Assembly (NCBI GenBank): GCA_024704765.1
Contig: JAKMXF010000302.1
Location: 124,001 to 188,000, forward strand
DNA: 64,000 bases
Direction: 5' to 3'
Source of the DNA: Oopsacas minuta
Lineage: Eukaryota; Animalia; Porifera
Shown here: in pieces, positions 1-60,455 of the stretch
Position numbering within the stretch: position 1 is the stretch's first letter
How the letters are laid out: each line of letters starts with the position of its first letter
Notes under the pieces: generated by a model
Seen by the model: only the letters and a program-made list of their open reading frames with translations
What the model was told of the DNA's origin: nothing
The model's database searches: none
Made by a program: the position numbers and the translations under genes

Positions 1-2
1 CT

Positions 3-1157
3 AAGTTTGCTAAATCATCCAAATTGTTTCGTATAAAACAGAGTAAATACGGTCCTGCTTGGGAAGAGAGTCTAATCCCATTCACTGTGTCTGTAACTGA
101 CCCAGAGAAGAAATCCAAATTCCACGGTATGAAGACATTTATAGCCTACGCAGTAACTCCCAGTAATACAAACCTTTCAGTCATTCGTCGTTACAAACAT
201 TATGACTGGTTACATGAGCGACTAATCGAGAAGTTCACTTGTCTCAGTATACCTCCTCTCCCTGACAAACAGCTTACAGGTCGTTTCAATGACGACTTTG
301 TAGAGAAGAGAAGAGATCAGCTAGAGGTCTGGACTAACCGTATTGCTAGACATCCTGTACTGGGTACTAGTGATGTGTTTTCTCACTTTATGTCCGTGTC
401 TGAGGAAGACACGATCAATTGGAAGAATGGAAAGAGAGCTGCTGAGAAGGATGAATTCGTGGGACCTTTATTCTTCTTATCAATCGATCATAACATTGAA
501 ACTATGGAGCTAATGCAAGCTGATTATGAGGTGGAATGTTTCGGTAAGTTTGCTACAAATATCGAAGAAGATCTCCAGCATCTACGGGATAGATTGGAGG
601 ATAGGAAACGAAAGTTTGAAGGACCATTTCGCAGAGAATTTCAGAAGTTCGCTGGAAACATTCAAGCTGTAGCTAAAACATTCCAAAAGGTTGATCAACC
701 TTTCTCTGAGCCTCTGACTCGTGCGCTTGATCACACAGCGATTACTCTATTCGACATAGGAGAGGATCATGTGTCACAACCTCCAAAAGATTTGGTACCA
801 TTTTCTGAGAATATAAAAGAGTATCTTAGTATTCTATCTGCATTCCCTGACCTAGTACACATCCATAAGGGTGCTGTAGCTAAGGTAAGAGAGAGTGAGA
901 AGTTGAAAGATGAATCAAAGATTGGAGCTTCTGATGTGCTAGATGTTACAAACCGTACAATAACAGTATCAGCTGCTCTTCAGTCAGAAATATTACATTT
1001 TCAGAGACAAAGAACTATTGACTTTCAAGGGATGATGAAAGAATACCTGAAACAACAAATCATGTTTTACCAGAATATTGCGAACAAGCTACAATCTACT
1101 TTGGATATGTATGAATTTGATGAAGATACTATCTCCCCTCTTAGTGCAAATGTCTAA
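3..1157 (+). CDS. Sorting nexin of the SNX9/18/33 family (PX-BAR part), 5' partial, no introns in the window
   Basis: PX motifs VIRRYKHYDWLHERL, IPPLPDKQLTGRF and RIARHPVL, followed by a helical BAR region ending QQIMFYQNIANKL. The frame is open from position 3, so the true start lies upstream of the window. Confidence 0.9.
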   Translation, partial: KFAKSSKLFRIKQSKYGPAWEESLIPFTVSVTDPEKKSKFHGMKTFIAYAVTPSNTNLSVIRRYKHYDWLHERLIEKFTCLSIPPLPDKQLTGRFNDDFVEKRRDQLEVWTNRIARHPVLGTSDVFSHFMSVSEEDTINWKNGKRAAEKDEFVGPLFFLSIDHNIETMELMQADYEVECFGKFATNIEEDLQHLRDRLEDRKRKFEGPFRREFQKFAGNIQAVAKTFQKVDQPFSEPLTRALDHTAITLFDIGEDHVSQPPKDLVPFSENIKEYLSILSAFPDLVHIHKGAVAKVRESEKLKDESKIGASDVLDVTNRTITVSAALQSEILHFQRQRTIDFQGMMKEYLKQQIMFYQNIANKLQSTLDMYEFDEDTISPLSANV

Positions 1158-1460
1158 CATAACTTGTTCAATCCCTGTTAAGCTGTTATTGACCTGTATA
1201 TTCCTGCGTAGTATATATTAGGTTCAACAATAACTTTTCTACTTCATGTACTCTTGATTTATATTTTAGTAACATCGTCTATTGTGTTATTTCATTTGTT
1301 TGTTTCGATCACATGGACTGTGTATTGTTCTAAATGTAATATATTTATTGTATTCGTTCATTTGTCAATTTATACAAACTGTCCTTAGAGGACAAATTAA
1401 ATTTCGCAGGATCTTATCCACCTACTCAAGTTTATACTTTCTTAGTTTGGTATAAGTATC

Positions 1461-2186
1461 ATGTGTGCAGTCAATATAGATGAAAATAGTCTCTACGTCT
1501 TAACTGATAGAAGCATAACTCCAACTAATAACTCCCGTGGAGATGGGATGGAGAATATCTGTGAGTTTAGTTTTGATATAGATGACATCATGGAAGGTCT
1601 TGATGTCTCGATTGATCCCTCTGATAAGAAAGAAGATATGGGTAACATACTAGATGATTATATCAATGATTTAGCTCCCTTAGGCCCAGATGAAATGGGA
1701 GAAGATGGCAATTCTACTTCCATTGGTTCTAGCATTGTTAGTAGTGAGGGGGAATCTTCCAGTTTATTTGGAAGTTCATATAATGCTATTACCTTTGTAG
1801 AACAGTGTACCAAGGATATTATGGATATGAACACTTTACCCGATGAAATGGAGATTGGTCCTGAGGACTCTCCTCCTCTCTCTCCTCTCTCTAACTATAC
1901 TAACTCATTCACACAAGAATCTCATACGATTATTCCACAGGGAGAGATATCATCCCTAGGTAGAGCTATTATAACTACACCTCTAGATACACCAGCTGAT
2001 CCTTTATTAGCAGAGCTAAAAGATAAACTATCCAGTTTACAGTGCTTTGAGAACGTGCATATGTATAAAAGCAGTGAGAGAAGGTGCTTTGATTTCTCTA
2101 CACTATCTCCAGATGACGTCATTAGATCAACAGAGAATATTTATAACATAAACAACAAACAAGAAAAAAAGAACAGCTGTTTGTAA
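1461..2186 (+). CDS. Acidic low-complexity protein (241 aa) with a C-terminal FDFxxxSPDD motif; candidate Ski7/HBS1L-V3-like exosome adaptor
   Basis: Intact ATG-to-TAA ORF with coding-like composition. RRCFDFSTLSPDDVIR lies at about 2079-2126. The functional call rests on this one short motif. Confidence 0.55.
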   Translation: MCAVNIDENSLYVLTDRSITPTNNSRGDGMENICEFSFDIDDIMEGLDVSIDPSDKKEDMGNILDDYINDLAPLGPDEMGEDGNSTSIGSSIVSSEGESSSLFGSSYNAITFVEQCTKDIMDMNTLPDEMEIGPEDSPPLSPLSNYTNSFTQESHTIIPQGEISSLGRAIITTPLDTPADPLLAELKDKLSSLQCFENVHMYKSSERRCFDFSTLSPDDVIRSTENIYNINNKQEKKNSCL

Positions 2187-2483
2187 TAATCTTTATTTAA
2201 TCGAGTTTTGTGTATATTTGATTTCTATGACCTGTAAGCTTGTCACTACTAATGTTTAGTTAATTAGTTCTGAACAAAATACAAATGGGGAAGTAAAAGC
2301 AAACTTAATTAAGTTTAAATAGTTAACCTTTACCACGTGTCTTGCATGCGATACTCAATAGGCCATTAACTAAGCTATAAAATCGCCTATTTGTTATAAA
2401 TATTATTTGTAGAACCAATTGTTACAATTCTCCGACTTATTAGAAGCTTGCTTTCGAGACGATCTCCTTCTCCCAGTTCAAGG

Positions 2484-2795
2484 ATGGCTTTCTGCGGTTT
2501 CAGCAGTGAGGTCTATAAAGACCACTTTACAACAGGCGTATACACCTGTTCTAATTGTAACTACGAGTTATTTGACAGTAAATCTAAATTCAAACATTCT
2601 TCTCCCTGGCCTGCCTTCACAAGCACTGTACATGCTGATAGCGTATCTAAACGTTCCGAGACTAAGACAGCTTTTAAGGTGTCATGTGGTAAATGTAAGA
2701 GTCCACTAGGTCATGAGTTTGTTGGAGATGGTCCAGGCGGAGGGTCACGCTTTTGAATATTCTCAAATACTCTCAAATTCGTTGAGAAACAATAG
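2484..2795 (+). CDS. MSRB1: Methionine-R-sulfoxide reductase B1 (selenoprotein R), 103 aa, with TGA 2754-2756 read as Sec
   Basis: MAFCGF start, two CxxC motifs (CSNC, CGKC), HSSPWPAF and [27 protein letters not shown] matches the MsrB1 SRFUIFSSSLKF motif across the UGA, and a SECIS follows. Confidence 0.95.
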
Positions 2796-2845
2796 AGCCT
2801 CGCTTCTATCATTACCCTCCTAATTCATAGTCTTCTTCATTCAAC

Positions 2846-3097: not shown

Positions 3098-6000
3098 ATG
3101 GCGGAGGCTTTCAGCCCTGATCTATTTTCTGATTTCAGGCGGACAACAGGTCCCCAGAGATCGAGAGGTCAAGGTAAGAGAGAAAAGGGGAAGGTAGAAA
3201 AGCCCACGATTAAATCACAAGAGTTTAACCCTCCCCCTCCTGATACAAAGAGGATGAGACACGATACATTTAATTCAGATATACAAGATATATCTCAATC
3301 ATTTACTACAATATCAAATAATGATACACAGGTTATATTACTTTCAGTCATATCAATATACACGTCTATATGATGCAATAGATAATTGATACGTATTTGA
3401 TAAAATTATGTATTTTGAATAGACCTTTAAATTCTAGAATATTCTGTTCTTTTTAGGGCGATTGTTGCATCATTTTTGGAATGAATATAAGCAAGCAAAT
3501 TTTTCATACAAATCATAGCATCTAATATTATGTAATTTTACAGATATCACAAGATTTTTCTAAAGCAGACTCCTCTCAGCTGATGTCCTCCCAACTCGTG
3601 TCACAAGATGTAGACATTCCTGAGAAGTTATCAGCTGTTGACAAGGTGGTAGAAGAATCTAGTCTAGGATTCAAATTCCCGCGTGCTGCCTTCCTACAGA
3701 TTGATACGGGACATTCCGGCTGTGTACACGAAGTATCAGTACCACAGGATATAGAGTATGCTCCCCTTGTCCCATCAAACGAGCCCCCTCTCAGGAAGTT
3801 CCCATTCAAACTGGACCCCTTCCAGCAGGAGGCGATAGACTGCCTAGAAGGTAACCACTCTGTGTTGGTAAGCGCGCATACATCAGCTGGAAAAACAGCT
3901 GTTGCAGAATACGCTATAGCTCTTAGTCTTAAAGACAAACAAAGAGTCATATACACAACCCCCATAAAGGCTCTCAGCAATCAGAAGTATAGGGAAATGC
4001 TGGATATATTTGCTGACGTAGGATTAATGACAGGTGACGTCACTATCAATCCTAGCGCATCAGTACTTGTCATGACAACGGAGATCTTGAGAAATATGTT
4101 GTATCGCGGCTCTGAAGTAATGCGAGAAGTGGGATGGGTTATATTTGATGAGATTCATTACATGCGTGACAAAGATCGCGGAGTTGTGTGGGAAGAGACT
4201 ATAATACTATTACCAGATAATGTCCACTATGTGTTCCTATCTGCTACTATTCCTAATGCGAGACAATTCGCAGAATGGGTATCTCTACTACATAAACAGC
4301 CTGTACACGTAGTATACACTGATCAGAGACCTGTTCCTCTACAGCATTATATATTCCCTGGAGGAGGAGATGGCCTGTATCTAGTAGTCAATGAGAGCGG
4401 AGAATTCTTGGAGGAAAACTTTCAGAAAGCAATGGCTATTCTATCAGAGAGTTCTGAGAGTAAAGGTAAGAAGCAGAGCGGGTTTAATAAGGGTGGTGGG
4501 TCAGTGGAAAAAATTCTAGAGAGTATAATGGAAAAGAAGCTTCAGCCTGTGATAGTGTTTAGTTTCAGTCGTAGAGAGTGTGAATCATACGCCCTACAGC
4601 TGTCTAAGATGGATTTCAATACTAGTGAAGAGAAGAAACTTGTTCAAGCTGTATTTCATAATGCTATTGCTATTCTTAATGCAGAAGATAAGCAACTCCC
4701 TCAGATTGAAAACGTCCTCCCTCTCTTAAAGAGAGGTGTGGGTATACACCACTCAGGTCTCCTACCTATACTAAAGGAGATTATAGAGATATTATTCGGA
4801 GAGGGACTACTCAAGGTACTATTCGCTACAGAGACATTCTCACTTGGACTTAACATGCCTGCTAGGACAGTAGTGTTCGCTAGAGCTAGGAAGTTTGATG
4901 GTGAACACTTCCGCTGGCTAAACAGTGGTGAGTATATACAGATGTCTGGACGAGCTGGTAGGAGAGGACTGGATGACAGAGGTATTGTTATGCTTATGGT
5001 TGATGAACATATGGATGCTGCTATAGGTAGGATAATATGTAATATTATGTGTTATAGTAATAATATGAATTAAATTAGGGAGGAGTTTGCTACAAGGAGA
5101 TCCACATCCTCTGAACTCAGCTTTCCATCAGACATACAATATGGTGCTTAATCTGTTACGAGTAGATGGAATTAATCCAGAGTATATTCTAGAGAGGAGC
5201 TTCCATCAATTCCAGAATAACTGTGGCATTCCAGAGCTTGAAACCCGTCTCCAGGATCTGGACGCTAAGAAGGCTTGTATTTGTATACGTAACGAGGATC
5301 AGATCAGTTCGTATTACAAAATAAAACAACAAATAGATAGGTCAGTAAACGTTTGTAATTATCCATGGTCCAGATTAAATAGTAGTATTGTATTAGACTG
5401 AAGGGAGAATGTCAAAAGTACATTTTAAAGCCTCAGTACTGTCTGCCTTACTTCCAGCCAGGACGTATGTTGAGGGTAACTAATGGAGAAGATAATTTTG
5501 GCTGGGGAGCAGTGATTAACTTTCACCGGAAAGCTAACCCCGAGGCTAAGAAGAATCCTAAATCAGATGAGTTCGTAATAGTTGTTGAAGTTCTCCTTAG
5601 TTGTACTACAGAATCAGTTAAGAAAGCTCCTAAATGTCCTCCTGAACCAGCAAAACCCGGAGAGCCAAAAGAGTTACAAGTAATCCCTGTATTACTAGAA
5701 GCAGTAGCTGATATATCAGTAGTTAGACTATACCTACCTGATGACATCAGATCTGTAGAGGCTAGAAGGAAGGTGGAGAGGTGTATGGATGAAGTAGCGA
5801 ATAGATTTAATGGAGATTTTCCTAAACTTGATCCTATCCTTGATATGAATATAAAAGAGGATGGATTTAAGGAGCTGGACAAGAAAATAAAGTTGTTACA
5901 AGGTAGATTAGAATCTCACCAACTTCATGATTCTCTTGAACTAGAAGCACTCTACGCTATGTTCAAGGAGAAAGAGAGATTACAAACTGAAGCTAAACAG

Positions 6001-6679
6001 GTGATTTAATATTCATATTACTATTTGTTCTATTTACTTCTGTTCATTAAAGATACGAAAAGATTTAAAACTAGCTGAATCAGTGCAACAGATGGATGAG
6101 TTAAAGAGACGTAAGCGCGTGTTAAGACGTCTGGGATATGCTAGTGCTAATGACGTCATAGAAATGAAGGGTAGAGTAGCCTGTGAGATAAGCAGTGGAG
6201 ATGAACTATTGCTTACAGAGATGATATTCAATGGAGCATTTAACTCTATAACTCCTGAACAATGTGTAGCTATACTGTCATGCTTTGTATTCCAGGAGAA
6301 GTGTGACGAACAATTACAAGTAGCAGAGAATCTATCTGGTCCTCTAAAACTAATGCAGCAGTGTGCTAGAAGAATAGGTACAGTCTCAGTAGAAGCTAAA
6401 ATGGCAGTAGATGAGCAGGAGTATGTTAACTCATTCAAACCTCATCTTATGGGTGTTGTATACAGCTGGGCAAAAGGTGCTCATTTCGGAGATATCTGTA
6501 AGATGACGTCAGTATTTGAGGGTAGTATAATCAGATGTATGAGACGGCTAGAGGAATTGCTTAGAGAGATGGCACAAGCTGCAAAGACTATAGGAAATGA
6601 AGAATTAGAGCAGAAGTTTAATGATGGAACTCTTAAAATTAAAAGAGATATTGTGTTTGCAGCTAGTCTGTATTTATAA
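3098..6679 (+). CDS. MTREX: MTR4/SKIV2L2 exosome RNA helicase (spliced, about 5 exons)
   Basis: [30 protein letters not shown]/arch FGWGAVINF and C-terminal [17 protein letters not shown] introns at 3332-3543, about 5027-5079, about 5341-5396 and 6001-6052 join the ORF pieces in frame. Confidence 0.95.
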
Positions 6680-6803: not shown

Positions 6804-9800
6804 ATGAAAATTGACAAAATTAAACTGAAGAGGAGTGTCAATGATTTAGTGAGTTGCCCTCTTTAGTTATTTACCCTCTCAGTAATTAATGTTATCCTGT
6901 ATGTAGCCTCAATCATGTAGAGATGTTATACAATTATTCAAATCTTGTCCTGATCAAGTTCTACTAGCAGAACTCAAGAATACAATTACATGGAATTTCG
7001 GAAAGGTATTATAGTACATTAACTTTACTTCTACAGTATGTTATACGTATATGTATTGTCTAATAGAGCGAGTTGTATCACTGGATAGATGTTCTGAACA
7101 GATTTGATCAAATATTATCTGAGTGTACTCAACTACCTCCCGAGAATCCTCTCTATGAACCAGAGAACATTTATCTAGTTCCTGACATAGCTGATCCTCA
7201 GGTTTATACTGTCATATTGCTTATATATTTGTTACTGTAGTTAATTATTCAATTCTATTTAGAAACGAGAATTAGTTCTACAAATCCTCTCATTCACAGC
7301 ACTGCTTATAGAGAATGCGAATGCTAGGCACACGTACTACTCTATGGAGGTACTATTACGGCCTTATATTCATTAAGTTAACGTATTAATTATATCTTAC
7401 ATATATCTAGCACTTGATTGCTCTACTCACAAGCAATGACTTAGACGTAGTTCTGGCATCACTTAATGTTATTTTCGTATTCAGGTAGGTAACTAATGTA
7501 TTTCCCTAATAACCCATGGTACTTATCTTTTCTTATATGCTAGCAAGCGGTGTCATTATATAAGCAGACTCCCAACTTCTCAAAGAAACGCACTAACCAA
7601 CAGACTAGTACATCTAGCTGAGTCTATGGGAGGGAAGGAGAGCGGGTTTGGTCTGTGTAAACTATCTAAAATACACGATATGCAGGTATGTATTGTTCTA
7701 TGTGTATAATACTTGTTTATTTGTATGTAACACCACTATTATTTACTTTATAGCATTTTCCAGCTTCTGCTACTTCTGTACATTTTGAATTTGCTCTTCA
7801 AGGTGCTTCTGAAGATGAGGTTAGTACATAAATTCATAATCCCCACTCCTCTACTCCTCTACTCCTCTATAAATATTATTCTTATTATCTTATACATTAT
7901 TTAGTTTGTAGATAACAATCAAACTATACAGCTAGACAACTTATATAATGTAAGTTATTGTTGTTTTCCTTACTTGTTGTTGTTGTTTATATGTTTCATT
8001 GATTAGTTTACAGAAAATCCACAACAAATTTTACAACATGTTCTCAAGACATATACTATATCCCGACAAAAACAGGTGATTTATTATTCACGAATTCCCC
8101 CACTTTCTAGGCCTTAAATTTAAAAATTATTCCATCTTTTAGTTTCACTTACTCTACAGAATACAGAGAGCAATGCATTTCCCTAATTTTAATAAGAGAT
8201 GTCAGTGTATAGAGGCACAACTCATGGCTAAATCTATTCTTAGTAAGATCTATTCTGTTAGAATTTACTGTAAATATTCTGTAACTTATACGTACATGTG
8301 TTGTTTAGTCTATTCTGCTTTTGTACCTGACTTCATACAGACCTCAGTGGAACAGGGATTGATAGAAGAGCTAGTTGAGCAGCTGGAAGTAGACTCAGAT
8401 GATGACGTCATAATGGTATGATTAATTAATAACTATCACAGAATAAGTATTGCTAATCTAATCTCATTATTTGTTAGAAATTAAAAGCTGCTTGTTTCAG
8501 AAATCTTACAGCTCTCTTACAACAAGAACGAGAACCAAGGTATAGAATTATAACATGAACGGTAGACTTTATGACCAGGGATAACCATATTTATAACTCT
8601 TCTAGAAGCTGTCCTATCATTAACAAAATAATATCAGCTTTAGATTGTCAGAATTATTACGGTATTCTAGCCTCTCTAGTTAGGAAGATTATTAAAACTA
8701 TGACAGGTGAATAACGCAAAAATTATCTACTTTAATGGCAGAACGTATACTGATAGCTTTATGTATTTAGAAATGAATGTTCTCCTATACTCTCAAGCCT
8801 TCATTACTACTCTATTCTCATTTCTCTATCACATGGCTATTAACGAGACAAGTAAGTTATATTATACTTACGTAATTAACCTTTGGTATCAATTCCTATA
8901 TATACTTGTAAAGGTGCAACTGCTCTGATTGCAAGTGGACACATAGAGTTCTTAATTCAAGTTATTTCATGGAAGACAGACAACCCTCTTAATGTATCAG
9001 TGAGTGCGAATACTTCATGTATACCTGAGTTTATACTAGTTTTGTATTTATACTTGTATTCAGTTAGTAACACGAGCTGTTAGAGTAATAGATCTACTCT
9101 CTACTCTTGATATACAGCCCACACAAGCTAAGTCTATTTGTGACATGTTATTCGAGAGATTAGAAGTGAGTAATTTGCTATGATATGGAATATAATATAT
9201 ATATTATGTGTAATGCAAACAGATGGAGATGAAGATTTGTAGAAGAGATGCACCATATGAGTTACCAGCTGTTAATCCTAAAGACCCTGAAGTTAAAGGA
9301 GATAACAGTCCGGATAAGGATGGAGATAACAAGAGTACTGAGAGTAAAGATATTGTTAAAGTAGAACCGATGGATCTAGAGGAACCTCAATGTACTGTAA
9401 CCCCTGAACAATTGCAACAACATTTATTAGAAATGAGGCAATCGAATCTACAATGTCTTCCTCAGAGATCAGCTCTCATAAAATCTCTTCTGAACTTCTT
9501 CAAGAAAGCAGCTTCTGATTTGTTCTTCCCTGAAACACTTCGTAATCGTTAGTGAATTAATATTAATAACAATCAGCTGATATTATATATCTCTCTATTG
9601 TAGTTTGTGAATCTCCTCTGCTCCCTCATCTCAAGCATATTATAAGCAACGTAGAGTACTATGGTCCTACTCTATACTTACCAGGTAATTTGACTGGTTT
9701 ACTTACTATTCTTATGACATATTATGCTACTCTCCTTCTAGCTACTGAGATAGTAACTAATCATATTCTTAATGAGCCCTCTCATCTCACCCCTCTACAA

Positions 9801-26331: not shown

Positions 26332-26635
26332 TCAAACTTTTACAACCCTTGGGTAGTCTCGCTTGTTTCACAGTGACTTAATCAGACTTTGTCAATCATT
26401 GTAATCACTACCTACTTTAAGCGCATAGCTGGCTTGTAGATTATTGCCTCATCATATTACTTCTATGTAGGAGAACTGTTACTAGACATAATAATTATAT
26501 GACTTTAGATTCTAATTACTAGTTTGAATGTTGTCTATGATTGTTTGTATTATAGTTTAACTAGTATGGGATAATTTGTAACAAGCATTGTGTATATTAG
26601 GGTGTATTCGGTATCTTTACTGTCTGTTATGATAG

Positions 26636-37236: not shown

Positions 37237-37388
37237 AAGTCTACAGGATATACCAGGAACTTCGAAGATAATTTTACAACTATTTTACTTACATATCTCA
37301 CTTTTGAATTGTACTTTTCTTATTATACTATTTCTTTATCGAATATATTACTACTTAATTTCAATATTAATCTCTCATCTGCTTTAGA

Positions 37389-43219: not shown

Positions 43220-43228
43220 TATAAATAG
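43220..43228 (+). promoter_or_regulatory. TATA box candidate upstream of the DRAM/TMEM150-like gene
   Basis: TATAAATAG begins 51 nt upstream of ATG 43271, inside the inverted repeat GACTAT-AA-ATAGTC. TATA-like strings are common in AT-rich DNA. Confidence 0.45.
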
Positions 43229-43270
43229 TCCCTCTCGCTGGAAAGACTATATATAATTCGAATCTTAAAT

Positions 43271-49578: not shown

Positions 49579-49833
49579 AAATAATTATGACGCAATCTGT
49601 TTTGTGAATCGATTCTCACTTATCTTTTAATTTTCCCCTGTAAAGCATGGCAGCTATGGTATTTTACCTTCAAATCTATAACTGATGGAAATTTGAATTT
49701 TAATACAAGTTATACGGGAAACTCTAAAATACATAAGTAGATAGCAGAATTGCTTTCTAGCGGGAATCTATGAATTATACGTTATAGTCTTACTAATTTA
49801 TTGAATATCAACTGATATATTAGACCTAATTCT

Positions 49834-52118
49834 ATGTCAAAACGACGCCAACAAGTGCTGAACTCTAGCTCAGAGGATGAAGCTGATTCTGACATAGAAA
49901 ACAACAAGCGAGTGAGGCCTGCTAGTTCTGACTCTTCTACTGAAGGCAGTGACTTAGATTGGACTGTAGACGGCAATACTAGTGTTAAGCAGAAGAAAAA
50001 GTCCACAGCTGGAGGAGGTGGTGCTAATAACCACGATACGGAAAGGGGAGAAAGGAATTCTTCTAGTCCTGGAGACAGCTGGGAATCTGGAGAAGACAAA
50101 TCTGACGATATGAACGATTCAGATTCTGATTCAGTAGAATCTTACAATTCTGTCTGTATATCAGATGAGACCACGTCAGGGGAAGATGAATTCAGTGATG
50201 GGTTTGACAATACTCTCAGAGGAGGACCTGAGGACAGGGCTATGCTGGAGCAAATGACAGAGGCAGAGAGAGAAGTGGAAATATATCGACGTCTTGAAAA
50301 TCGTGAGAGATTGTATGAACGAAAGAAGATTTATAAACAAATGAAAAGAGAACGACGTGAAAAGGAGAAGAGAGAGAGACCTGATAAAGCAAGGGAGAGG
50401 AGTGAGAAGAAGCGACAAAGAGAGTTATTCGAGATTAACAGGAGATCCGAGCGTAAAAGGAAACTAACTGATATAAAGAGGTCTGAGGCTATTGACCAGC
50501 TTAAACAAAATCGTCAGTTACAGAAAGAGAAACAAGAAAATGAAGTTATTAGTGAAGAACCTGACTACCCAAAGAAGAAAGCTTCTCCTAAGAAGAAACT
50601 CACTGTAAGTTGAGAATACAGTATTCGTTGTTATCCTAAGCTACTATTTAATATCTCTTTATTCGTAGGTTAAAGAGGTGTTTGGAAAATCAGGAATTGA
50701 GACAGATGAGGATGAATATGACAACAAACGGGGCCTTGAAGAAACCCAGGACATTGAAGATGACAGTGATGGAAAAGAATTAGAGTTAGGATTAAAGAAA
50801 TCTTTGCGACACCTTCCCATCTCATTTGTGGAGGAGATTAATAAGGTCAGAATGTCCAGGTTCCGTCTAGACAGCTGGGTACACATGCCTTACTTTAATG
50901 ACGTAGTGATCGGCTCATATGTTAGAATCGGTATAGGTTCTAATGAAGGGAAGAGCATTTACAGAGTTGCAGAGATAATGGAGGTTGTTGAGACGCCTAA
51001 AGTATACAATATCATCAATAATCCTACCAACAAAGCCCTGAGGCTAAAACATGGATCACAGGTATTGTCGATTCAGTATATTGTTATGATTTGTATTTAA
51101 TCGTGTAAGTGTTTAGGAGAGAGTATTCAGAATGCAGTTTGTCTCAAATGCTGATATAACTAAGGCTGAATTCGACAAGTGGAGATCAGCTGTTAATTGC
51201 GCTAGCATGAGATTGCCTACTAATATAGAAATCCGTAAGAAATTGAGGGCTATAGAAGAAGCAAAAGCTATTGTTCTGAATGATGAAGATATTGGATTAA
51301 TCGTGAAAGAGAAGGAGAGATTTCGAAAACTACCAACCAATTATGCAATGGCTAAAGCACGATTAAACGCAGCTAAAGACAAAGCTGAGATGGCCGAGAA
51401 TTTCGAGGAAGCACAACTATTGTCTGAAAGAATAAATGAAATTAATGAGAGAGCTGAAATGTTGGAGAAAGTTAGGAATAAAGATCTGACAAGAATTTCC
51501 TTTATAAATGAGAGAAACAGGATGCACAATTTACAGGTACTGTATAGTGAATTAAGCTTAATTTATTGCACAAAGTAACTAGCTAACTAGTTGATCAAGA
51601 GAGATTTAGGATTTCTCTCAATTTAGAGAGAGGAGACTATCAGAATAGAAATGGCAGAGAGGAGAGAGGATAATCCTTTCACCAGAAGGAAATGTGCCCC
51701 TAAGCTCGCTCCAATCGCACATCTCCACAACACATCTATAGGAGAGGGCGTAGAGACTCCAGAGAAAACGGTAACCGAGACTGCTCCAAAAATTCACACT
51801 TTGTTAGAAACACCAGTTCCCACCTCTGGTTTTAATCCTGCCTCTCAGCCTGACCCAGTATCTGGCTTGTTTGACAAAACTCTGGAGTTGAATGGTAATG
51901 ACATTCCTAACCAAACTCCAAACTCATGCAGGATTGCAACAAACCATTCTCTTAACCTGTCAAATGCACACGATTTTGATATACCAATTGACTTCCCTAC
52001 TGACATGACAAGCTCTCTTCCACACATGAACATATTATCCTCACAGGAGTCTAACAAAGGTAATCCTAGAAAAAACCTAAATCTTTCAGACTACAAAAAA
52101 AGAAAGGGCCTCATTTAG
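49834..52118 (+). CDS. RTF1: PAF1 complex subunit RTF1 (Plus3 domain), spliced
   Basis: EQMTEAEREVEIYRR, Plus3 RMSRFRLDSWVHMPYF..SYVRIGIG, PTNYAMAK, NPFTRRKC, HDFDIPID and C-terminal NLNLSDYKKRKGLI. Confidence 0.93.
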
Positions 52119-52466
52119 TATCGTCAGTGCTTTGTCCCTCCTAGCCGCGAATAGGCCTCTGTCTGTCTGTCTTGCATAGCTCCTGAAGATGGTCTCATAT
52201 CAACTCTAACTTTGCTCATACACATAAACTTACTTAGCAATTGTTTGTACTATTATTATGCAGAGATTCTCACTTCATATAGTTTTGAGTAAGTTTGAAT
52301 TTGTGTTAACCACACAATTTTGCCATTTTTGTGAGCTTTGGGGTGAGTAGAGAATGTATCCATAGTCCAATGACAGATTAGTTAGGCTCTTATACGCTAA
52401 TATTGATGTATAGCAAATAACAATAATATATTATTAGTATCTCTCTCTCTTGTTTAGTTGATAAAA

Positions 52467-53369
52467 ATGCCCTACGCTAATAAACCAATTGTACGTGTAC
52501 TTGAAGTTACAAGCGAGAGTGTAAAATTCGTAATCGAAGACACCGACCTTGCTATGGCGAATGGACTGCGTCGCGTGTTTATCTCCGAGATTCCTACTAT
52601 TGCCATTGACTGGGTTCGAATAATTACGAATTCAACTGTTCTTCATGACGAGTTTATCGCGCATAGACTGGGTATGATCCCTCTAAGGAGTGATGACGTA
52701 GTTGAGAAGCTGGAATACTCGCGGAATTGTTTATGTGAAGAATTCTGTGAGAAATGTTCTGTAGTGTTTGAACTAGATGTTCGTTTTCAGGACGATAGGG
52801 AAGATAAAGCAGCTGCTACTCGACAAGTAACAACTAGAGATCTCCATTCCCATAATATGAAGGTTAGTTTATCTCTGATATTTCTAAATGTATATTTTCT
52901 GAATAATAATACGTTTATTGTATAGGTCATGCCTACTACTACTCCAGGAAAAGATATTGATAGCTCAGGGTATAGCGAGGAAGATGATATACTAATTGTA
53001 AAGCTACGTAAGGGTCAGGAACTCAAATTACAGGCAGTAGCTAAAAAGGGGTTCGCGAAGGAGCACGCTAAGTGGGGTACATCTGTGGTATCATTTGAGT
53101 ACGATCCTGATAATGCCCTCAGACACACAACCTTCCCTATACCTGAGGAATGGCCTAAGAGTGAGCACTCAGAGATCGGAGAGAAAGAAGTGCAAGCTCC
53201 CTATGACTTCCAATCCAAACCGAACAAATTCTTCTTCAATGTAGAAACGATAGGAGCTCTTCGTCCTGAGACAATAGTTCTATCTGGTATCAACGTGTTG
53301 AAACAAAAATTATCTAATCTACAGCTGTCTTTCTCTACAGAAATTTCACAGGGAACTGTTGCTTATTAG
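52467..53369 (+). CDS. POLR2C: RNA polymerase II subunit RPB3, one intron (52863-52925)
   Basis: [62 protein letters not shown] and [12 protein letters not shown]. Confidence 0.96.
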
Positions 53370-53502
53370 ATTTTATTTGAAATATAAAAGAATGAGAGAT
53401 ATAGTAATACTGCATTATAAACCAATGTAATGATTTCATGTCAGATCGTTCTCCTCATTATAACGAGTTATTTCAACTGATTAGCACTTTATCCGTATTC
53501 TT

Positions 53503-54462
53503 ATGGCAGAAGCTACCCCTGTAATATCAAATATAAATGGTTCACATTTCAAAGATCTCCCATTCTTCATTAACCAAAGCTTTCTAGAGCTCACTAAGCC
53601 TGCTTATGGGAAAATATTAGACAAATCATCTATAGAGACATTATGTGGGGGTTGTGAGATATCGCGAGACATTGACTTGGCTAAATCATTGAGTACAGCT
53701 GGAGGAGAGGATTGGTCTGTACTGAAGGGGTATCCTAAGTCTCCCATGGTGTTAAGATTAGCTTGTTGCTTGATTGTGTGGATGGATAGAGGGAGTGCTG
53801 AGCTCTGTCCTACACATCATCTACCTGATATGTATCTGATGAATGAGTCAGAGCAGAAACAGAAACGTATCCTCAGATTGGACCAGGGATGGGAGGTAAT
53901 TACGCATTGGGTTATAAATATATTTGTATAATATTTATATCATATTACGTGTATATAGGTGTTGAAGAAGTTCCCTGATAACTGGTATCAATGGCCTGAT
54001 CAAACAAAACAAAAAGAGTTAACAAACCTTATTTCTCAGATAGAATTGAGAGGAGTATTAGATTTAATCGGGTTTAGAGAGACAGTAGGTAGCAAGCTGT
54101 TAATACCTCCTACAAGAGAGGTTATAATGCAAACATTCACTGCTCTACACTCTGAAGGCTCTAAGCTTTCGGTAGGGGCTAGAGCTTTTGCTAAACACGG
54201 ACATCGTGACCATACAGCCTCTTGGTGGGGGACATGTACTGGTTCAGAAGAGCAGAAGAATGAATCAGCGCTCAAAATCGTTACTAAGATCCTAGACAAT
54301 GCAGCGTGGATGAATATACACTTTATGGTGCATGACACTGGTGTATTAGAGGCTAGGACTGTAGAAGGTTATGGAGTAAGGTGGTTAGCTGATGGGAAGG
54401 AGTTCAGAGGGTTCTTAGAGCCCCAGATGGAGGGAGGACATGAAGCTGGGTGGATACATTGA
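53503..54462 (+). CDS. Uncharacterised conserved protein, two exons (intron 53896-53958)
   Basis: The two ORFs join in frame (GWE|VLKK). The C-terminal block LSVGARAFAKHGHR...WWG...WMNIH...EGYGVRW...FRGFLEP...GHEAGWIH looks like a conserved catalytic domain. Confidence 0.8.
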
Positions 54463-54550
54463 TTGGATATATTTAGTTTGATTTTGTCTGTAAACTCTTT
54501 TAGATGTTTTGTTTTATTTGTTACTTGTATATTTCAGTTAGAGTTATAGA

Positions 54551-56220
54551 ATGCCTCCTAAAAAACCCAAGAAGAAGCAACCTAAAGAGAAGAAGGAAAA
54601 GAAGCCAGTCATTGTAGACGGGATGCCAGCTGAGCAGATGAGTCCCGAACAGCTGTTAGACTACATCGAGAAGTTGAGAGAGGAAGTAGATCGGGAAAGA
54701 GAAGAGAGGAACTTAATCCAGCTAGAGAGAGATAAGATTAATACCTTCTGGGATATATCGAAACAACATCTAGATGTAATTATGTTTATATTCGAATAAT
54801 TCTATCATTAATTAAGGAGTTTTCTATAGGATTGTAATTCTGAGATAAGAGTAAAAGAGAGACAAATCGAGGAAGGAGAGGAGAGACACCGAGTAGAGAT
54901 AAAAGTATACAAACAGAAAGTAAAACATCTTCTCTATCAACATCAGAATAATGTCACTGAGCTGAAGGGAGATGGTACTGCTGCTCTTAAGGCTCAGATG
55001 GGAGATCAGAAGCTGGAAGAGAAGAAGTTACATGAACAGATTTGGAATCTTAAGTCACAAACTAGAGAGGGGGAGCTATCACATGAAGAAGTGAGTTAAT
55101 ATAATAATACATAGCTGAATTAGTTTAATAATGTTTGTTGTTAGGTTATCCGCAACCTTAAGCGTGAACAAGACGAGTCAATAACAAAGATGCGTAAGGA
55201 ATACGAACAAGATGTTGATGAGATTCAGAGCAAATACGAGACTAAAATGTGGCGTCTGAGAGAGGAACTTGAGATGAGAAGAAAGAACGAAGTTCATGAA
55301 GTGGAAGAGAGGAAGAATGAGCAAATAAAGAACTTGATGGTTAATCATGAGAAGCAATTCTCTGATATCAAGAATTACTATAATGATATTACACATAATA
55401 ATTTATGTCTGATTACAACACTCAAGGAGAAAGTATGTTCCCTCATAATCAATCAACAAAACATGATTTATATAACTTATTATTTAGGTTGAAGAAATGA
55501 AGAAGAAGGAAGAAAGACTTGAAAAAGAATTGAATGAAAAACTAGCGGAGAATCGCAGACTCTTAGATCCACTCCAAAGAGCTAAGGCAGATGTAGCTGA
55601 GTTGAAGAGGAAGCTTCAGAATTATGAAAAAGACAAAATATCTCTCAATCATTGTAAGGTGCGACTTAAAGCTCAAGATAAAGAGTTAAAGAGTTTGAAT
55701 TGGGAGCATGAAGTTCTTGGACAGAGATATGACAAGGTAATACTCTAAATGTAGTATACGTCGTATGATAATATTTAATATAAATATATGCAAGGCAAAC
55801 ACAGAGAGAGATGGATTATACAATAAATTCACTCACACTATACAAGAAGTACAACAGAAGAATGGATTGAAGAATTTACTGTTAGAGAAAAAGCTAATGT
55901 CTCTAGCTGAAACTTTAGAAATGAAAGAAGCTCAACTAAATGAGGTATTATCTGCCTCTAATCTTGATCCTAATGCTCTTACTGCTGTCACACGTAAACT
56001 AGAAGATATCTTAGACAGCAAGAACACAGCTATTAGAGATCTGCAATATGAGTTAGATCGTGTATGTAAGGCTCATAACGACCTTATGCGGACGTATGAA
56101 GCTAAATTGAAAGCATTTGAAGTTCCCACAGAAGAGCTAGGCTTCAAACCACTAGAGAGTAAGGTAGTAGGACATACACTAGGTAAAGGTCCTGCTGGTC
56201 TAGTAACCGCACCTCCTTAA
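54551..56220 (+). CDS. GAS8: Dynein regulatory complex subunit 4 (GAS8/DRC4), spliced
   Basis: MPPKK...[58 protein letters not shown] and KNLLLEKKL. Confidence 0.93.
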
Positions 56221-56385
56221 CCTCTATTATACACGTAACCCAATCACTTGATTGTCTTCCAACTAATTTATGATTATATTCACATTATTATTCATTATAC
56301 CGCCTACATGATTAGTTCAGGGTATATTCTGTGGTAATTTAGTCAATACAAGTCATTGAGTCTATGTTAGTAGGATAATTAGCTT

Positions 56386-56895
56386 ATGATGCTCTCAGAA
56401 ATATACAAAGCTCACCAACAAGAACAGAATGAACGTCGCTTAGAGCAAGAACGGAAACGAAAACAGGCGATTAAGAGTGCTCAAGAAGTCAGCTCAGGAT
56501 TTGTAGATGCACTAAACAGTGGAGTAGAAGAAGCGTATGAGAATCAGAAGAAAATAAATTTACTTGTAAAAGATCTGCAAATACAATCTACTGTATTTTT
56601 AAAACAAGCCTCTCAATGGATAAACACAGTAGAAGGCTTCAATGCATCCCTCAAGGAACTAGGAGATCTTCCTAACTGGGCTAGCATCATAGAGAAAGAT
56701 ATGCTGCTTATCTGTAGATCTCTAGAATATGCTTATAACGGCCCTGCGGTTGATATCACCGACTCACCTATTCCTGAACACGTTATCCCTGTAGATACCC
56801 CTCCTATTTCTCCAATTGCTAATCTTGTTAAAGAACCAGGATCTGGTGCTGGCGAAGAGTTCAGACCTGAAACACCCCCAAAACAATCTTCATAG
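56386..56895 (+). CDS. BLOC1S1: BLOC-1/BORC subunit 1 (GCN5L1) with a Pro-rich C-terminal extension
   Basis: LNSGVEEAYENQKK, QWINTVEGFNASLKELGDLPNWA.IIEKDM and LEYAYNG. Confidence 0.9.
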   Translation: MMLSEIYKAHQQEQNERRLEQERKRKQAIKSAQEVSSGFVDALNSGVEEAYENQKKINLLVKDLQIQSTVFLKQASQWINTVEGFNASLKELGDLPNWASIIEKDMLLICRSLEYAYNGPAVDITDSPIPEHVIPVDTPPISPIANLVKEPGSGAGEEFRPETPPKQSS

Positions 56896-57074
56896 CTAAT
56901 AAATACTATTATTGTTGTAGTATATTCTAGTCCATAAAATAATTAACTAATAAAACACAGGAGATAAATATTTCCTTTTCTCTAAGTCCACCATACACGA
57001 TGCTACTTTTCGTGTTTGATTGGCTTTATTTGTTTGTGGCAATAGAATTATTAGTTTTCAGTTCGCATCTATAA

Positions 57075-57593
57075 ATGGCTTCAACAATTAGGAAGGGTGA
57101 AATTCAGATTGGTGAAAAGTTACCAGAGATTGAAATAATGACAGCTCCAAGTACTAAAGTTAAAATAACTGATCTTTTCAAGGGTAAGAGAGGGATCTTA
57201 TTTGGTTTGCCTGGTGCATTCACACCAACTTGTTCTAACACACATCTCCCCGAATTTGTAAGAGATCATGCTAAATGGGTAGAATTAGGATATGAGATCA
57301 TTTGCTGTGTTTCTGTTAACGACGCCTTCGTGATGGAAGCTTGGGGAAAACTGCATCAAGTTGAGGGCAAGGTCGTAATGATTTCAGATATGAATGCAAC
57401 ATTGACCAGGGCAATCGGACTAGAAATCGATTTGACGGATAAACTAGGAAGCATCCGCTCAAAACGGTACTCTATGGAAGTGAATGATAACTTGATTACT
57501 AGTATCCATGTTGAGTCTAGTCTGGGTGCTACTGGGTGTAGCACATCTAGTGCAATGCTAGGTTCTCTTAGTCAAGATATGATCCCATTATGA
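57075..57593 (+). CDS. PRDX5: Peroxiredoxin-5 (atypical 2-Cys), intronless
   Basis: GLPGAFTPTCS..HLPEF, SVNDAFVMEAWG and RSKRYSM. A second Cys lies in ATGCS near the C-terminus. Confidence 0.92.
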   Translation: MASTIRKGEIQIGEKLPEIEIMTAPSTKVKITDLFKGKRGILFGLPGAFTPTCSNTHLPEFVRDHAKWVELGYEIICCVSVNDAFVMEAWGKLHQVEGKVVMISDMNATLTRAIGLEIDLTDKLGSIRSKRYSMEVNDNLITSIHVESSLGATGCSTSSAMLGSLSQDMIPL

Positions 57594-57827
57594 AAACGAG
57601 TTTATAGAGAATTGTGTGATTATAATTTTAACAATATTATCTACTATTTGTTCTGGATAAATTTATATCTAGGGCAGCTAGCTTTGATCTATTTTTATCA
57701 AGTATTTGCTACACTATTATCTCCTTAAAGTATCCACAATGATACATCATGCTACGTTAAGGGTATTTACAGTACTGCACGTGCAATAACGATGATTGCA
57801 TTACACACCAAGCTCTACATGTGCATC

Positions 57828-57832
<5 letters not shown>

Positions 57833-57876
<44 letters not shown>
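57833..57876. repeat. (TA)22 microsatellite between PRDX5 and vasa
   Basis: Uninterrupted TA run of 44 nt. Confidence 0.95.
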
Positions 57877-57879
<3 letters not shown>

Positions 57880-58031
57880 CAACCATATCACTCATTGCTA
57901 GTTACTATACTTATAGCTAAAACTTTGTATCACATATTTTTATCTTATACAAGTATTGTGGATAACACACCTTTTCTCTGCTTTGTTATCATTAGCTATT
58001 ATCTGGGAAGAATCAGAGATAGTTTCTAATC

Positions 58032-60455
58032 ATGGCTGATTGGGATGATGAGAGACAGGATGGAGGCACCTCGAGTGCACCAGGTTTTGGAGATGGACGT
58101 TCAGGTGGCCGCGGGGGCGGTTTCGCAAATCGTGGATTCGGAGGGAGAAGAGATGACGACTCTGGTAGAGGAAGGAGGGGAGGTTTCGGAGGAGGCCGAA
58201 GAGATTACGATTCAGGATCAGGAGGTTTCGGCGGGGGAGACAACGAATCAAGGGGAAGGGGAGGATATAGCAGAAGAGACGATAACTCAAGTGGAGGCAG
58301 GGGTTACGGTAGAAACGATGATGACTCAAATAGTAGAGGTTACCGCGGAGGTAGAGATCGTGAAGGAGGCGGATTTGGTTGGCGAGGTCGCGATGGGGGA
58401 TTTGGTGGTGGTAGAGATCGTGACGGGGGCGGGTTTGGAAATAGAGATCGTGATGGTGGCGGATTTGGCGGTAGAGATCGTGATGGTGGTGGTGGTGGCT
58501 TTGGAAATAGGGATCGTGATGGTGGTGGATTTGGCGGTAGAGGTCGTGACGGTGGCGGCTTTGGGGGCAGAGATGGTGATGGAGGAGGCTATCGTGGGAG
58601 AGGCGGATACCGTGGAAGCAGAGGAGATGACGACGATGAGGAAGGTGGTCGCGGCGGATTCAGGTCTAATAGAGGAGGAAGGGGTGGTTCAGGCTTTGGA
58701 GATAGTGATGGTGGTTCTAGTCGAGGATTTGGAAGCAGAGGCTTCGGAGGAGGAGGTGGTGGCGGGGGCGGTGATTCAGAGGGTTTTGTCATGAGCCGCT
58801 CATTTGTCAATAGCTCTTCAGATGATAGAGGTCGTGGCCGTGGTGGATTCAGAGGAGGTAGAGGTCGTGACAGAGATGAAGATGGTGGTGGAGAATTCAA
58901 TAATTTTGGAGGAAGAGGCGGAGGAGGTGAAAGGTTTGGAGATGATGGACCGAGACCTGAACCTTATATCCCTCCAGCTCCATCTGAAAAGGAATCTGAA
59001 ATATTTGTGAATATCACGAAAGGAATCAATTTTGGACGTTATGACAACATTCCTGTTCAGCTAACTGGTCGTGAACCTACATCCCAGATCACTACATTTG
59101 CTGAGGCTCGACTGTCAACAACCATATCGTTGAATGTTACAAAAGCTGGTTACAATGAACCAACTCCTGTGCAGAAATATGGAATCCCAGTTGTTCTAGC
59201 CGGTAGAGATTTGATGGGATGTGCTCAAACTGGTTCGGGAAAAACTGCAGCTTTCCTTTTGCCAATACTCTCCACTATGGTGAGTAAGAGCCTCTATCAG
59301 AACACAAGCTTGGATCCGGGCACGGCTCACCCCACTGCTCTTATAATCGCTCCAACTAGGGAATTAGCTTTACAGATATACCATGAAGCTAGGAAGTTCT
59401 CCTACACAACTATAATAGAGCCTGTTGTAGCGTATGGTGGAACATCAGTAGCTCATCAACTCAGTAAAGTAGAGAAAGGCTGCCATATTCTTGTAGGGAC
59501 ACCTGGTCGTCTTATTGACTTTATGAATCGTGGTAGAGTCAAGCTGGATCAAGTAAAGTTTCTTGTACTAGATGAAGCCGATCGTATGCTGGATATGGGC
59601 TTCATTCCTGATGTTAAAAAGATGGTCCATGAATTTGACATGTGTGGAAAGAATGATCGCCAGACCCTAATGTTCTCAGCTACTTTCCCAGAAGAAATAC
59701 AGAGACTCGCGGCAGATTTCTTACACGATTATCTTTTCCTCACTGTAGGGAAAGTGGGTGGAGCCGCAAATGATATTGTTCAGAAAATTGTCCAAGTTGC
59801 AGCTTTGGACAAACGCGAAAAGTTGGCTGAAATATTGCGAGCCAATCCTGAACATAAAGTTCTTGTATTCGTAGAAACGAAAAGACAAGCTGATTTCTTG
59901 GCTACATACCTCTCTCAAGAAGCCTTTCCTACTACTAGTATACACGGAGCTAGACTTCAGAGAGAAAGAGAAGAGGCCTTACACGCTTTCAAAACTGGTC
60001 GTACTCCAGTCTTAGTTGCTACTTCTGTAGCTGCCAGAGGTTTAGATATTCCTAAGGTGAATCATGTTGTCAACTTTGACATGCCGAGCGACATTTCTGA
60101 GTATGTCCACAGGATTGGGAGGACAGGACGTATTGGACACACCGGTCTCGCTACCTCGTTTTTTGATTCAGCAAAAGACCAGGCTATAGCCAGGAGTCTT
60201 GTCAAGATATTATCCGACGCGGAACAAGATGTACCTGTATTCCTAGAGGAGATCGCTGAGGGAGCGATAGGCACAGGATACGGCGGTGCAGGAGGTGGCT
60301 TTGGAGGTACAGACAGAAGAGAGAGGGGAGGCGGAGGCCGAGACTCCGGTAACCGGGCTGATGGATATGGGGGTCAAACTTTTGGCGACCCAATCAACAC
60401 CGGTTTTGCAAGCTCTGTCCCACCCACTGCTGGGGACGATGAGAGCTGGGATTGA
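58032..60455 (+). CDS. DDX4: Vasa DEAD-box helicase, intronless
   Basis: RGG/FG-rich N-terminus, PYIPP..GINFGRYD, AQTGSGKT, PTRELA, GTPGRL, LDEAD, SATFPEEIQRLA, VGKVGGA (vasa type, not the GRVGST of PL10), HRIGRTGR and an acidic Trp-containing end DDESWD. Confidence 0.92.
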   Translation: MADWDDERQDGGTSSAPGFGDGRSGGRGGGFANRGFGGRRDDDSGRGRRGGFGGGRRDYDSGSGGFGGGDNESRGRGGYSRRDDNSSGGRGYGRNDDDSNSRGYRGGRDREGGGFGWRGRDGGFGGGRDRDGGGFGNRDRDGGGFGGRDRDGGGGGFGNRDRDGGGFGGRGRDGGGFGGRDGDGGGYRGRGGYRGSRGDDDDEEGGRGGFRSNRGGRGGSGFGDSDGGSSRGFGSRGFGGGGGGGGGDSEGFVMSRSFVNSSSDDRGRGRGGFRGGRGRDRDEDGGGEFNNFGGRGGGGERFGDDGPRPEPYIPPAPSEKESEIFVNITKGINFGRYDNIPVQLTGREPTSQITTFAEARLSTTISLNVTKAGYNEPTPVQKYGIPVVLAGRDLMGCAQTGSGKTAAFLLPILSTMVSKSLYQNTSLDPGTAHPTALIIAPTRELALQIYHEARKFSYTTIIEPVVAYGGTSVAHQLSKVEKGCHILVGTPGRLIDFMNRGRVKLDQVKFLVLDEADRMLDMGFIPDVKKMVHEFDMCGKNDRQTLMFSATFPEEIQRLAADFLHDYLFLTVGKVGGAANDIVQKIVQVAALDKREKLAEILRANPEHKVLVFVETKRQADFLATYLSQEAFPTTSIHGARLQREREEALHAFKTGRTPVLVATSVAARGLDIPKVNHVVNFDMPSDISEYVHRIGRTGRIGHTGLATSFFDSAKDQAIARSLVKILSDAEQDVPVFLEEIAEGAIGTGYGGAGGGFGGTDRRERGGGGRDSGNRADGYGGQTFGDPINTGFASSVPPTAGDDESWD
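58352..58590 (+). repeat. Coding tandem repeat of about 30 nt (RDRDGGGFG[G/N]), about 7 degenerate copies
   Basis: Recurring agagatcgtgatggtggcggatttggcggt-like units in the vasa N-terminus. Confidence 0.85.

Follow-up and report, generated by a model that had tools for sequence, protein, structure and literature searches.

Does a long head-to-tail run of animal genes form one transcription unit, or a chain of many? The question is raised by a 64,000-nucleotide stretch of the genome of the hexactinellid (glass) sponge Oopsacas minuta (contig JAKMXF010000302.1, positions 124,001 to 188,000), here called the window. Within it, 21 successive non-nested genes, from a sorting nexin to vasa, lie on the + strand over ~60 kb. 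A preliminary description of this DNA held that the spacers between these genes are too small for separate promoters and inferred that long multi-gene transcription units are read here, with possible resets at the longer spacers. Comparison with related sponges suggests a different organisation: we give about an even chance to a conserved head-to-tail chain of at least nine RNA polymerase II (Pol II) units with a few small operons resolved by a spliced leader, rather than one operon.

The co-oriented run and its conservation

The run consists, in order, of a partial SNX9-like gene (SNX), G2, MSRB1, MTREX, HUWE1, RIOK2, TAF1, PBLD, SDCCAG8, a SENP::SDCCAG8 chimera, SENP, WDR91, G13, a BRPF-like gene, RTF1, POLR2C, G17, GAS8, BLOC1S1, PRDX5 and vasa. 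Gene identities come from Pfam searches with the open reading frames (ORFs) of the window; WDR91, POLR2C and GAS8 were named through the Pfam families of the orthologous genes called in relatives. The G+C content of the window is 34-48%. Its introns are very short and very rare, and it holds long genes made of a single exon. Measured as the stop-to-ATG distance, the 20 spacers of the run are 303, 297, 302, 124, 304, 97, 101, 103, 133, 152, 469, 445, 261, 255, 348, 133, 88, 165, 179 and 438 nucleotides (nt) long in gene order. All 20 fall within 88-469 nt, nine of them at 88-179 nt, and every gene is on the + strand. The SDCCAG8>chimera spacer of 133 nt shortens to 82 nt if it is measured to the first ATG. 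Spacers account for 7.8% of the 60 kb, and their + strand is rich in T (40.6%, against 29.8% A).

Gene calls and Pfam matches bear out the run of 21 genes, and all 12 of the spacer lengths quoted in the preliminary description were exact on re-measurement. The chance figure of 2^-20 that it gave is arithmetically right; with random orientation of ~16,400 genes, ~0.01 such runs are expected genome-wide. The co-oriented run is well beyond chance. GatB (9874-11427), nested in a HUWE1 intron, is the sole - strand gene within it; other - strand ORFs of at least 100 codons inside the run all overlap + strand coding sequence. The run stops at vasa, which is convergent with Nup88 on the - strand.

Searches with PBLD and PRDX5 each turned up six related proteins of 69-79% identity, located on long contigs from other hexactinellid assemblies, and the genomic sequence of the relatives' loci was compared in 5-6 assemblies. 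From HUWE1 to vasa, gene order and + strand are identical in every relative examined, with ABHD16A nested in the HECT region of HUWE1. Nup88 and LSM, on the opposite strand, come after vasa in the relatives, and orientation is mixed beyond; this 3' end of the run was the same in the four relatives fetched there. The 5' part (SNX, G2, MSRB1, MTREX) is also kept in L016, the locus of one relative. There, Bap31, Inturned, TMEM106, a YTH-domain gene and SNX (L016 111-9695) all lie on the + strand 5' of G2, giving a same-strand run of at least 25 genes. Since four extra + strand genes precede SNX in L016, the run may begin before the start of the window.

The chimera is the sole array gene missing from the relatives (0/5) and, judging from this comparison, is species-specific. 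Its start codon, acceptor and upstream spacer are homologous to the ancestral SDCCAG8>SENP junction and to the SENP start of the relatives. Long spacers remain long across species (SENP>WDR91 367-545 nt, WDR91>G13 ~300-465 nt, RTF1>POLR2C 348-418 nt, PRDX5>vasa 366-438 nt), and short spacers mostly stay short (83-317 nt).

Acceptors and two classes of spacer

Spliced-leader trans-splicing has been published for hexactinellids (PMC10282587, PMC7986045); in A. vastus, a ~37-nt leader was present on 4% of Nanopore cDNA reads (PMC10282587). Four public sequencing runs that hold the window stretch were compared here. X1-X3 are DNA, with even depth, long contigs and Nextera adapter ends; X4 is RNA, as its GT..AG joints and very uneven depth show. 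The X4 contigs were inspected over 52400-58399, with 19 of 330 loose ends listed.

One X4 contig has 11 non-genomic letters, and the joint coincides with the AG (52456-52457) of CTCTTGTTTAG (TTTAG), 9 nt 5' of the POLR2C ATG. Neither the window nor the fetched loci contain an exact match to the 11 letters, and near matches followed by GT occur there at chance level; a leader RNA gene was likewise not found in these sequences. The junction fits the published trans-splicing of glass sponges.

Acceptor-like motifs are concentrated beside the start codons. TAG or CAG (YAG) ends within 10 nt 5' of the ATG at 15 of 20 starts, against 25% expected from its density in the rest of the spacers (P = 5e-6); using the true start of the chimera, 36019, raises this to 16 of 20. 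In 5-6 species, which are not independent samples, the 13 junctions compared give 69 starts, 58 of which have YAG in the 10 nt upstream of the ATG; 28% would be expected. In most alignments (T)TAG is the lone conserved feature beside the ATG, and the rest of the spacer is mostly unalignable. TTAGC is kept before PBLD, and TAG abuts the RIOK2 ATG in five of six species and is 1 nt off in the sixth. TAF1, PBLD, G17, GAS8 and PRDX5 have a conserved (T)TAG 0-13 nt upstream of the ATG in 5-6 species, apart from G17 in the window, where the distance is 18 nt; leader-bearing RNA from these five genes did not appear among the 19 of 330 loose ends listed for X4 over 52400-58399. The same acceptor feature precedes the ATG of Nup88 and LSM on the opposite strand. 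For G13, the nearest acceptor is at least 42 nt from the ATG. Together with the one junction seen, this pattern suggests a functional trans-splice acceptor at nearly all genes here.

The spacers fall into two classes by the number of invariant columns in the best 25-column stretch of five-species alignments. The unconserved class (no more than 10 of 25 invariant) comprises RIOK2>TAF1, TAF1>PBLD, PBLD>SDCCAG8, POLR2C>G17, G17>GAS8, BLOC1S1>PRDX5 and PRDX5>vasa; the first six of these have no more than nine invariant columns in any 25. In the conserved class, the best 25 columns contain 25 (HUWE1>RIOK2), 22 (BRPF>RTF1), 20 (RTF1>POLR2C), 18 (GAS8>BLOC1S1) and 17 (SENP>WDR91) invariant positions. 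In addition, WDR91>G13 has a conserved TATAAATA box and G13>BRPF a conserved TTCACTTCC. The spacers that keep the acceptor alone are solely those before TAF1, PBLD, G17, GAS8 and PRDX5.

At least eight spacers hold conserved promoter-like blocks, consisting either of the TATAAATA box or of an A/T-rich element followed by an initiator-like (Inr-like) TCACTT; two of these spacers are short (133 and 165 nt). The fly initiator has the consensus TCAKTY. In many blocks a gap of 8-14 nt separates the A/T-rich element from TCACTT, an arrangement that resembles a TATA-like box plus initiator. At G13, the box TATAAATAG (43220-43228), conserved in the cross-species alignment ~45 nt 5' of the ATG and without a nearby acceptor, has what looks like a classical promoter layout. 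The argument that such spacers leave no room for promoters was not borne out: conserved promoter-like blocks are present even in the 165-nt GAS8>BLOC1S1 and the ~130-nt SDCCAG8>SENP/chimera spacers. Because such blocks fit into ~130-165 nt, small spacer size does not exclude promoters.

Per kb of spacer, the Inr-like set (TCACTT, TCTCAC, ATCACT) is found 2.6 times on the + strand and never on the - strand. An Inr-like motif is present before RIOK2, WDR91, RTF1, POLR2C and BLOC1S1 in most or all species, before SDCCAG8 in most relatives and before SENP in half of the species. Before TAF1, PBLD, G17, GAS8 and PRDX5 it is absent in every species compared. Promoters could be hidden in the coding ends upstream; a search of the final 400 nt of the gene preceding each of these five found no conserved motif.

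The most conserved block, of ~95 nt (26392-26486, HUWE1>RIOK2 spacer), is near-identical in an alignment of six assemblies, whereas the flanking proteins are ~73-92% identical. This non-coding block has no Rfam match and no convincing consensus fold. It could be the promoter region of RIOK2 or an element of the HUWE1 3' untranslated region (3'UTR).

Candidate operons and competing explanations

Under the preferred reading, most or all mRNAs of the array would be given a spliced leader, joined at a (T)TAG that sits 0-15 nt 5' of the ATG, as suggested by the acceptor pattern and the junction at POLR2C. A few runs of two to four genes would probably be C. elegans-type, leader-resolved operons with intercistronic regions of ~90-180 nt; candidates are RIOK2-TAF1-PBLD (possibly with SDCCAG8), POLR2C-G17-GAS8, BLOC1S1-PRDX5 and perhaps MTREX-HUWE1. 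Downstream genes in such operons would have no promoter of their own. Their mRNAs would be freed from a polycistronic precursor through 3'-end formation upstream and trans-splicing at their own acceptor.

In the first candidate, RIOK2 (26636-28027) would be the first gene, followed by TAF1 (28125-32993) and PBLD (33095-33964); all three, and SDCCAG8 (34068-35885), were identified by Pfam. The 97-nt spacer upstream of TAF1 keeps TTAG alone and the 101-nt spacer upstream of PBLD keeps TTAGC alone. In the relatives, CTCACTT directly follows the PBLD stop; O. minuta lacks it. SDCCAG8, with its 103-nt upstream spacer, may join this candidate in O. minuta since CTCACTT has been lost there.

The second candidate begins with POLR2C (52467-53369; two exons and a 63-nt intron seen in RNA), which was named from the relatives' Pfam families; a conserved block upstream contains TCTCACTT at 52268-52275. 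It continues with G17, described earlier as the '53503' gene. This gene (53503-54462) is real: its two exons, 53503-53895 and 53959-54462, are joined by an RNA-supported 63-nt GT..AG intron, and its product has no Pfam match. Its 133-nt upstream spacer is unconserved. The last member is GAS8/DRC4 (54551-56220; GAS Pfam family on orthologous exons), for which the 88-nt upstream spacer keeps the acceptor alone. A merger of the '53503' ORF with GAS8 through the RNA joint 53893>53957 was considered and rejected; the joint lies within a separate gene, linking its two exons, and this gene ends at 54462, ahead of the GAS8 start at 54551.

The third candidate pairs BLOC1S1 (56386-56895) with PRDX5 (57075-57593), both identified by Pfam. 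A conserved block with ATCACTT (56243-56249) lies in the 165-nt spacer before BLOC1S1; the 179-nt spacer before PRDX5 is unconserved. MTREX-HUWE1 is possibly a fourth candidate on the basis of spacing and strand in O. minuta. A related case may be ABHD16A (23883-25460), which lies on the same strand in the HUWE1 intron that splits the HECT domain in all six species (window 23865-23891; L001, L003, L006-L008). Upstream of its ATG (23883), conservation is limited to ATTAGC. Because this acceptor alone is conserved, ABHD16A may be released from its host transcript in the same manner as the downstream genes of operons.

RNA was found in the spacers. X4 contigs extend coding sequence into them at 54434-54524, 56863-57036 and 57496-57981, covering the first 62 of the 88 nt after G17, the first 141 of the 179 nt after BLOC1S1 and 388 of the 438 nt between PRDX5 and vasa. 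Summed X4 depth, which is a poor measure, is ~5k for POLR2C, 10-23k for G17, 30-60k for GAS8, 4-10k for BLOC1S1, 2-6k for PRDX5 and 86-142k for vasa. The summed steady-state depth of neighbouring genes thus differs up to ~30-fold; vasa has more than 100 times the depth of its upstream spacer and ~20-30 times that of PRDX5.

Several points weigh against small operons in a chain of transcription units. Firstly, no listed X4 piece bridges two genes over 52400-58399, where the contigs are fragmented, 19 of 330 loose ends are listed and contigs cannot prove single molecules. Secondly, depth spreads about tenfold among POLR2C, G17 and GAS8, again by the poor measure of summed steady-state contigs. 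Thirdly, the one leader junction seen falls at POLR2C, which the model places first in an operon, and not at a downstream gene; only 4% of the A. vastus long reads bore a leader (PMC10282587). Fourthly, spacers proposed to be operon-internal reach 200-317 nt in some relatives, and an unconserved spacer is not proof of a missing promoter. Finally, the conserved blocks might belong to the 3'UTRs of the genes before them. An A/T-rich element, ~12 nt and CA is also a poly(A)-site-like layout, and TCACTT was not uniquely enriched in a de novo hexamer count, in which T-rich words dominate. Since the vasa 3'UTR also holds conserved blocks, conservation alone does not identify a promoter.

The vasa blocks are short and lie at 60456-60560 of the window (also in L009 and L013-L015); they comprise AGAAACGCCCAC and a AGCTCAAGGTGCA-like sequence and may be post-transcriptional control elements of a germline gene.

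Further observations bear on whether the blocks are promoters or poly(A) sites. TCACTT is less likely as a poly(A) signal: the motif is absent at 10 of 10 convergent vasa/Nup88 3' ends in five species and after ABHD16A. A TCATTC variant is found 60-95 nt upstream of the ATGs in the divergent spacer between LSM and an unnamed gene X, a spacer that can hold promoters only; in two relatives it occurs in both directions. On balance a promoter role is fairly probable, and a poly(A) role less so.

The LSM<->X spacer is itself unusually small. LSM (- strand) and the unnamed + strand gene are divergent with 56-90 nt between their ATGs (window 63750-63839; L009 16477-16536; L015 16455-16510). Two relatives carry ACTCATTC at ~60 nt 5' of both ATGs, with one copy on each strand. 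The spacer looks like a minimal bidirectional promoter.

Among the alternatives, the absence of any operon survives best, as a possible but less probable account. Each gene would have its own small promoter, in the spacer or in the 3' end of the upstream gene; trans-splicing would replace a short outron, and the close spacing would come from genome compaction and conserved microsynteny. This is favoured by the fit of promoter-like blocks into ~130-165-nt spacers, by the range of short spacers between species (83-317 nt), by the strongly unequal RNA depth of neighbours and by the extensive microsynteny of glass sponges in general (PMC10282587). It does not account for the five spacers that, in 5-6 species, have no conserved element beyond the acceptor and no Inr-like motif either there or in the last 400 nt of the upstream gene. 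Nor does it account for a 21-gene same-strand run that is beyond chance and turns mixed right after vasa.

An unlikely alternative is that the run reflects a constraint unrelated to mRNA processing, such as the avoidance of head-on conflicts of transcription or replication, or a shared chromatin domain. The whole block, including the apparent promoter junctions, is conserved as a unit in all relatives. Because these junctions are conserved too, operon constraint alone would not explain the integrity of the block. However, an unrelated constraint leaves the conserved acceptors at start codons and the two classes of spacer unexplained.

The whole run (21 genes; at least 25 in a relative) could also be a single kinetoplastid-like read-through domain, or a few very long units, extending through the 60-kb array and further upstream. 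The blocks would then be boosters or 3'UTR/processing elements, and trans-splicing would define every mRNA, including those of genes in introns. Consistent with this are the 21 co-oriented genes and the four more + strand genes upstream of SNX in L016, the acceptors ahead of nearly all start codons, RNA in every spacer bin of the 6 kb examined, and the blocks themselves, which often start at a fixed distance, 5-70 nt, past the upstream stop codon. A kinetoplastid-type unit would have no gene-specific promoters within the run; putative promoter blocks lie before RIOK2, WDR91, G13, BRPF, RTF1, POLR2C and BLOC1S1. Known animal operons contain 2 to ~11 genes. Given these points, the conserved canonical TATAAATA ~45 nt before the G13 ATG with no nearby acceptor, the absence of the Inr-like motif at convergent 3' ends while a related form occurs in the divergent promoter-only spacer, and a vasa depth far above that of the preceding spacer and of PRDX5, such a domain is very improbable.

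The proposal of long multi-gene units thus stands in part. A trans-splicing lineage, conserved acceptors and several short spacers that conserve the acceptor alone are in keeping with multi-gene transcription, but the promoter-like blocks in at least eight spacers argue against one giant array-wide unit. Of the resets suggested at the longer spacers, those at SENP>WDR91 and WDR91>G13 coincide with conserved promoter-like blocks; PRDX5>vasa has no such block.

A chain of transcription units with small operons can be compared with known systems. Spliced-leader operons are known in nematodes, tunicates, flatworms, chaetognaths and Hydra. The SL2-type operons of C. elegans are similar in their same-strand housekeeping genes, ~100-nt U-rich intercistronic regions, acceptor before the downstream ATG and units of 2-8 genes. 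Unlike C. elegans, the sponge has no known second, operon-specific leader; its genes with promoter-like blocks also bear acceptors, and its operons are proposed from sequence. Tunicates (Oikopleura dioica, Ciona) share a very compact genome, tiny introns, many single-exon genes and co-oriented runs resolved by one leader. In tunicates, intercistronic regions are mostly <30-60 nt or absent, in contrast to 88-180 nt in the sponge. Kinetoplastid units likewise string together unrelated genes by the tens in one orientation, each ORF preceded by an acceptor; the sponge array differs in its internal conserved TATA plus Inr-like blocks, very unequal RNA of neighbours and mixed orientation just outside.

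The bicistronic RFC140-flp operon of Hydra is another non-bilaterian case with trans-splicing, and has an A+T-rich intergenic region in which a T-rich tract and an acceptor precede the downstream gene (PMC3273482). There, reporter constructs showed that the intergenic region has no promoter and that the acceptor is required; the sponge case is proposed from sequence. In the chaetognath Paraspadella gotoi, an operon is defined as at least two same-strand genes <250 bp apart, at least one of which bears a leader (PMC12460157). By this rule, POLR2C-G17-GAS8-BLOC1S1-PRDX5 would count as a validated operon and MTREX-HUWE1 and RIOK2...SENP as candidates. The rule does not test for internal promoters, and the cross-species comparison splits those sponge runs further.

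According to a 2021 survey, operons had yet to be reported for hexactinellid sponges (PMC7986045). The O. minuta genome paper does not mention splicing or operons, and neither glass-sponge genome paper (A. vastus PMC10282587; O. minuta) analysed gene orientation or operons. A literature search found no paper reporting operons in Hexactinellida. If true, the small operons would be the first in Porifera, and would provide an independent case for the idea that operons arise wherever a genome both trans-splices its mRNAs and becomes compact. Being shared by several hexactinellid lineages, they would also be unusually old.

Further features of the window

At the 5' end, the SNX9/18-like sorting nexin (1-1157, +; PX and BAR domains by Pfam) continues beyond the window, which lacks its 5' part; the L016 ortholog has SH3, PX and BAR domains. 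G2 (1461-2186, +) is a single-exon ORF with no assigned function and no Pfam match; a 49%-identical ortholog occupies the same place in L016. MSRB1 (2484-2795, +) has a SelR domain and in-frame stops, with an in-frame selenocysteine codon (Sec-TGA) at 2754 and its stop at 2793.

The NCBI model 'Methionine-R-sulfoxide reductase B1 [Oopsacas minuta]' (344 aa; window 1461-2753) fuses the unrelated G2 ORF with MSRB1. It splices away the G2 stop and most of the 297-nt spacer and terminates at the Sec-TGA. Since L016 carries G2 as a separate gene, the fusion is probably an annotation artefact of tight same-strand spacing. Exact-sequence look-ups with PBLD and G2 gave no match; for G2 this is explained by the fusion of the public model with its neighbour. 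Automatic annotation thus fuses adjacent genes here, and operon-aware re-annotation would alter gene counts and claims of 'missing genes'.

In L016, a 4.26-kb stretch (SNX 3' fragment, G2, MSRB1 region and 5' part of MTREX) is present twice in tandem at 9300-17730. A recent tandem duplication would explain this, as would an assembly artefact.

The MTREX-like DExH helicase (3098-6679, +) has several exons and was identified by Pfam and exon joins. HUWE1 (6804-26331, +) was recognised by its HECT domain and its collinearity with the relatives; besides ABHD16A and GatB (the latter also named by Pfam), its introns contain a tRNA-Ser (15561-15644, +). Further downstream, the chimera (36019-37236, +) consists by tblastn of a SENP 5' part and an SDCCAG8 3' part. 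SENP, an Ulp1 protease (37389-39731, +; Pfam), has TCTCACTT at 37296-37303 in its 152-nt upstream spacer. The WDR91-like gene (40201-42825, +; relatives' Pfam families) has seven exons and several conserved blocks in the 469-nt spacer before it.

G13 (43271-44326, +) is an ORF with no assigned function and with orthologs in the relatives. It had been labelled 'TMEM150-like'; no Pfam match to its product was found. The BRPF-like gene (44588-49578, +; EPL1, PHD, bromodomain and PWWP by Pfam) is preceded by the conserved TTCACTTCC at 44392, and RTF1 (49834-52118, +; Plus-3 domain by Pfam) by a conserved block with TCTCACTT at 49614-49621.

The final gene of the run, vasa (58032-60455, +; Pfam), has a weakly conserved 438-nt upstream spacer, in which a (TA)22 microsatellite lies at 57833-57876. 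The convergent Nup88 (61140-63311, -) was identified by Pfam. At window position 58112, the RNA run has C>T at about two thirds of its depth (11 contigs), and the three DNA runs of the same sample lack it. This synonymous change (CGC>CGT, Arg27 of vasa) falls in a repetitive RGG region; a mapping artefact or another allele is possible.

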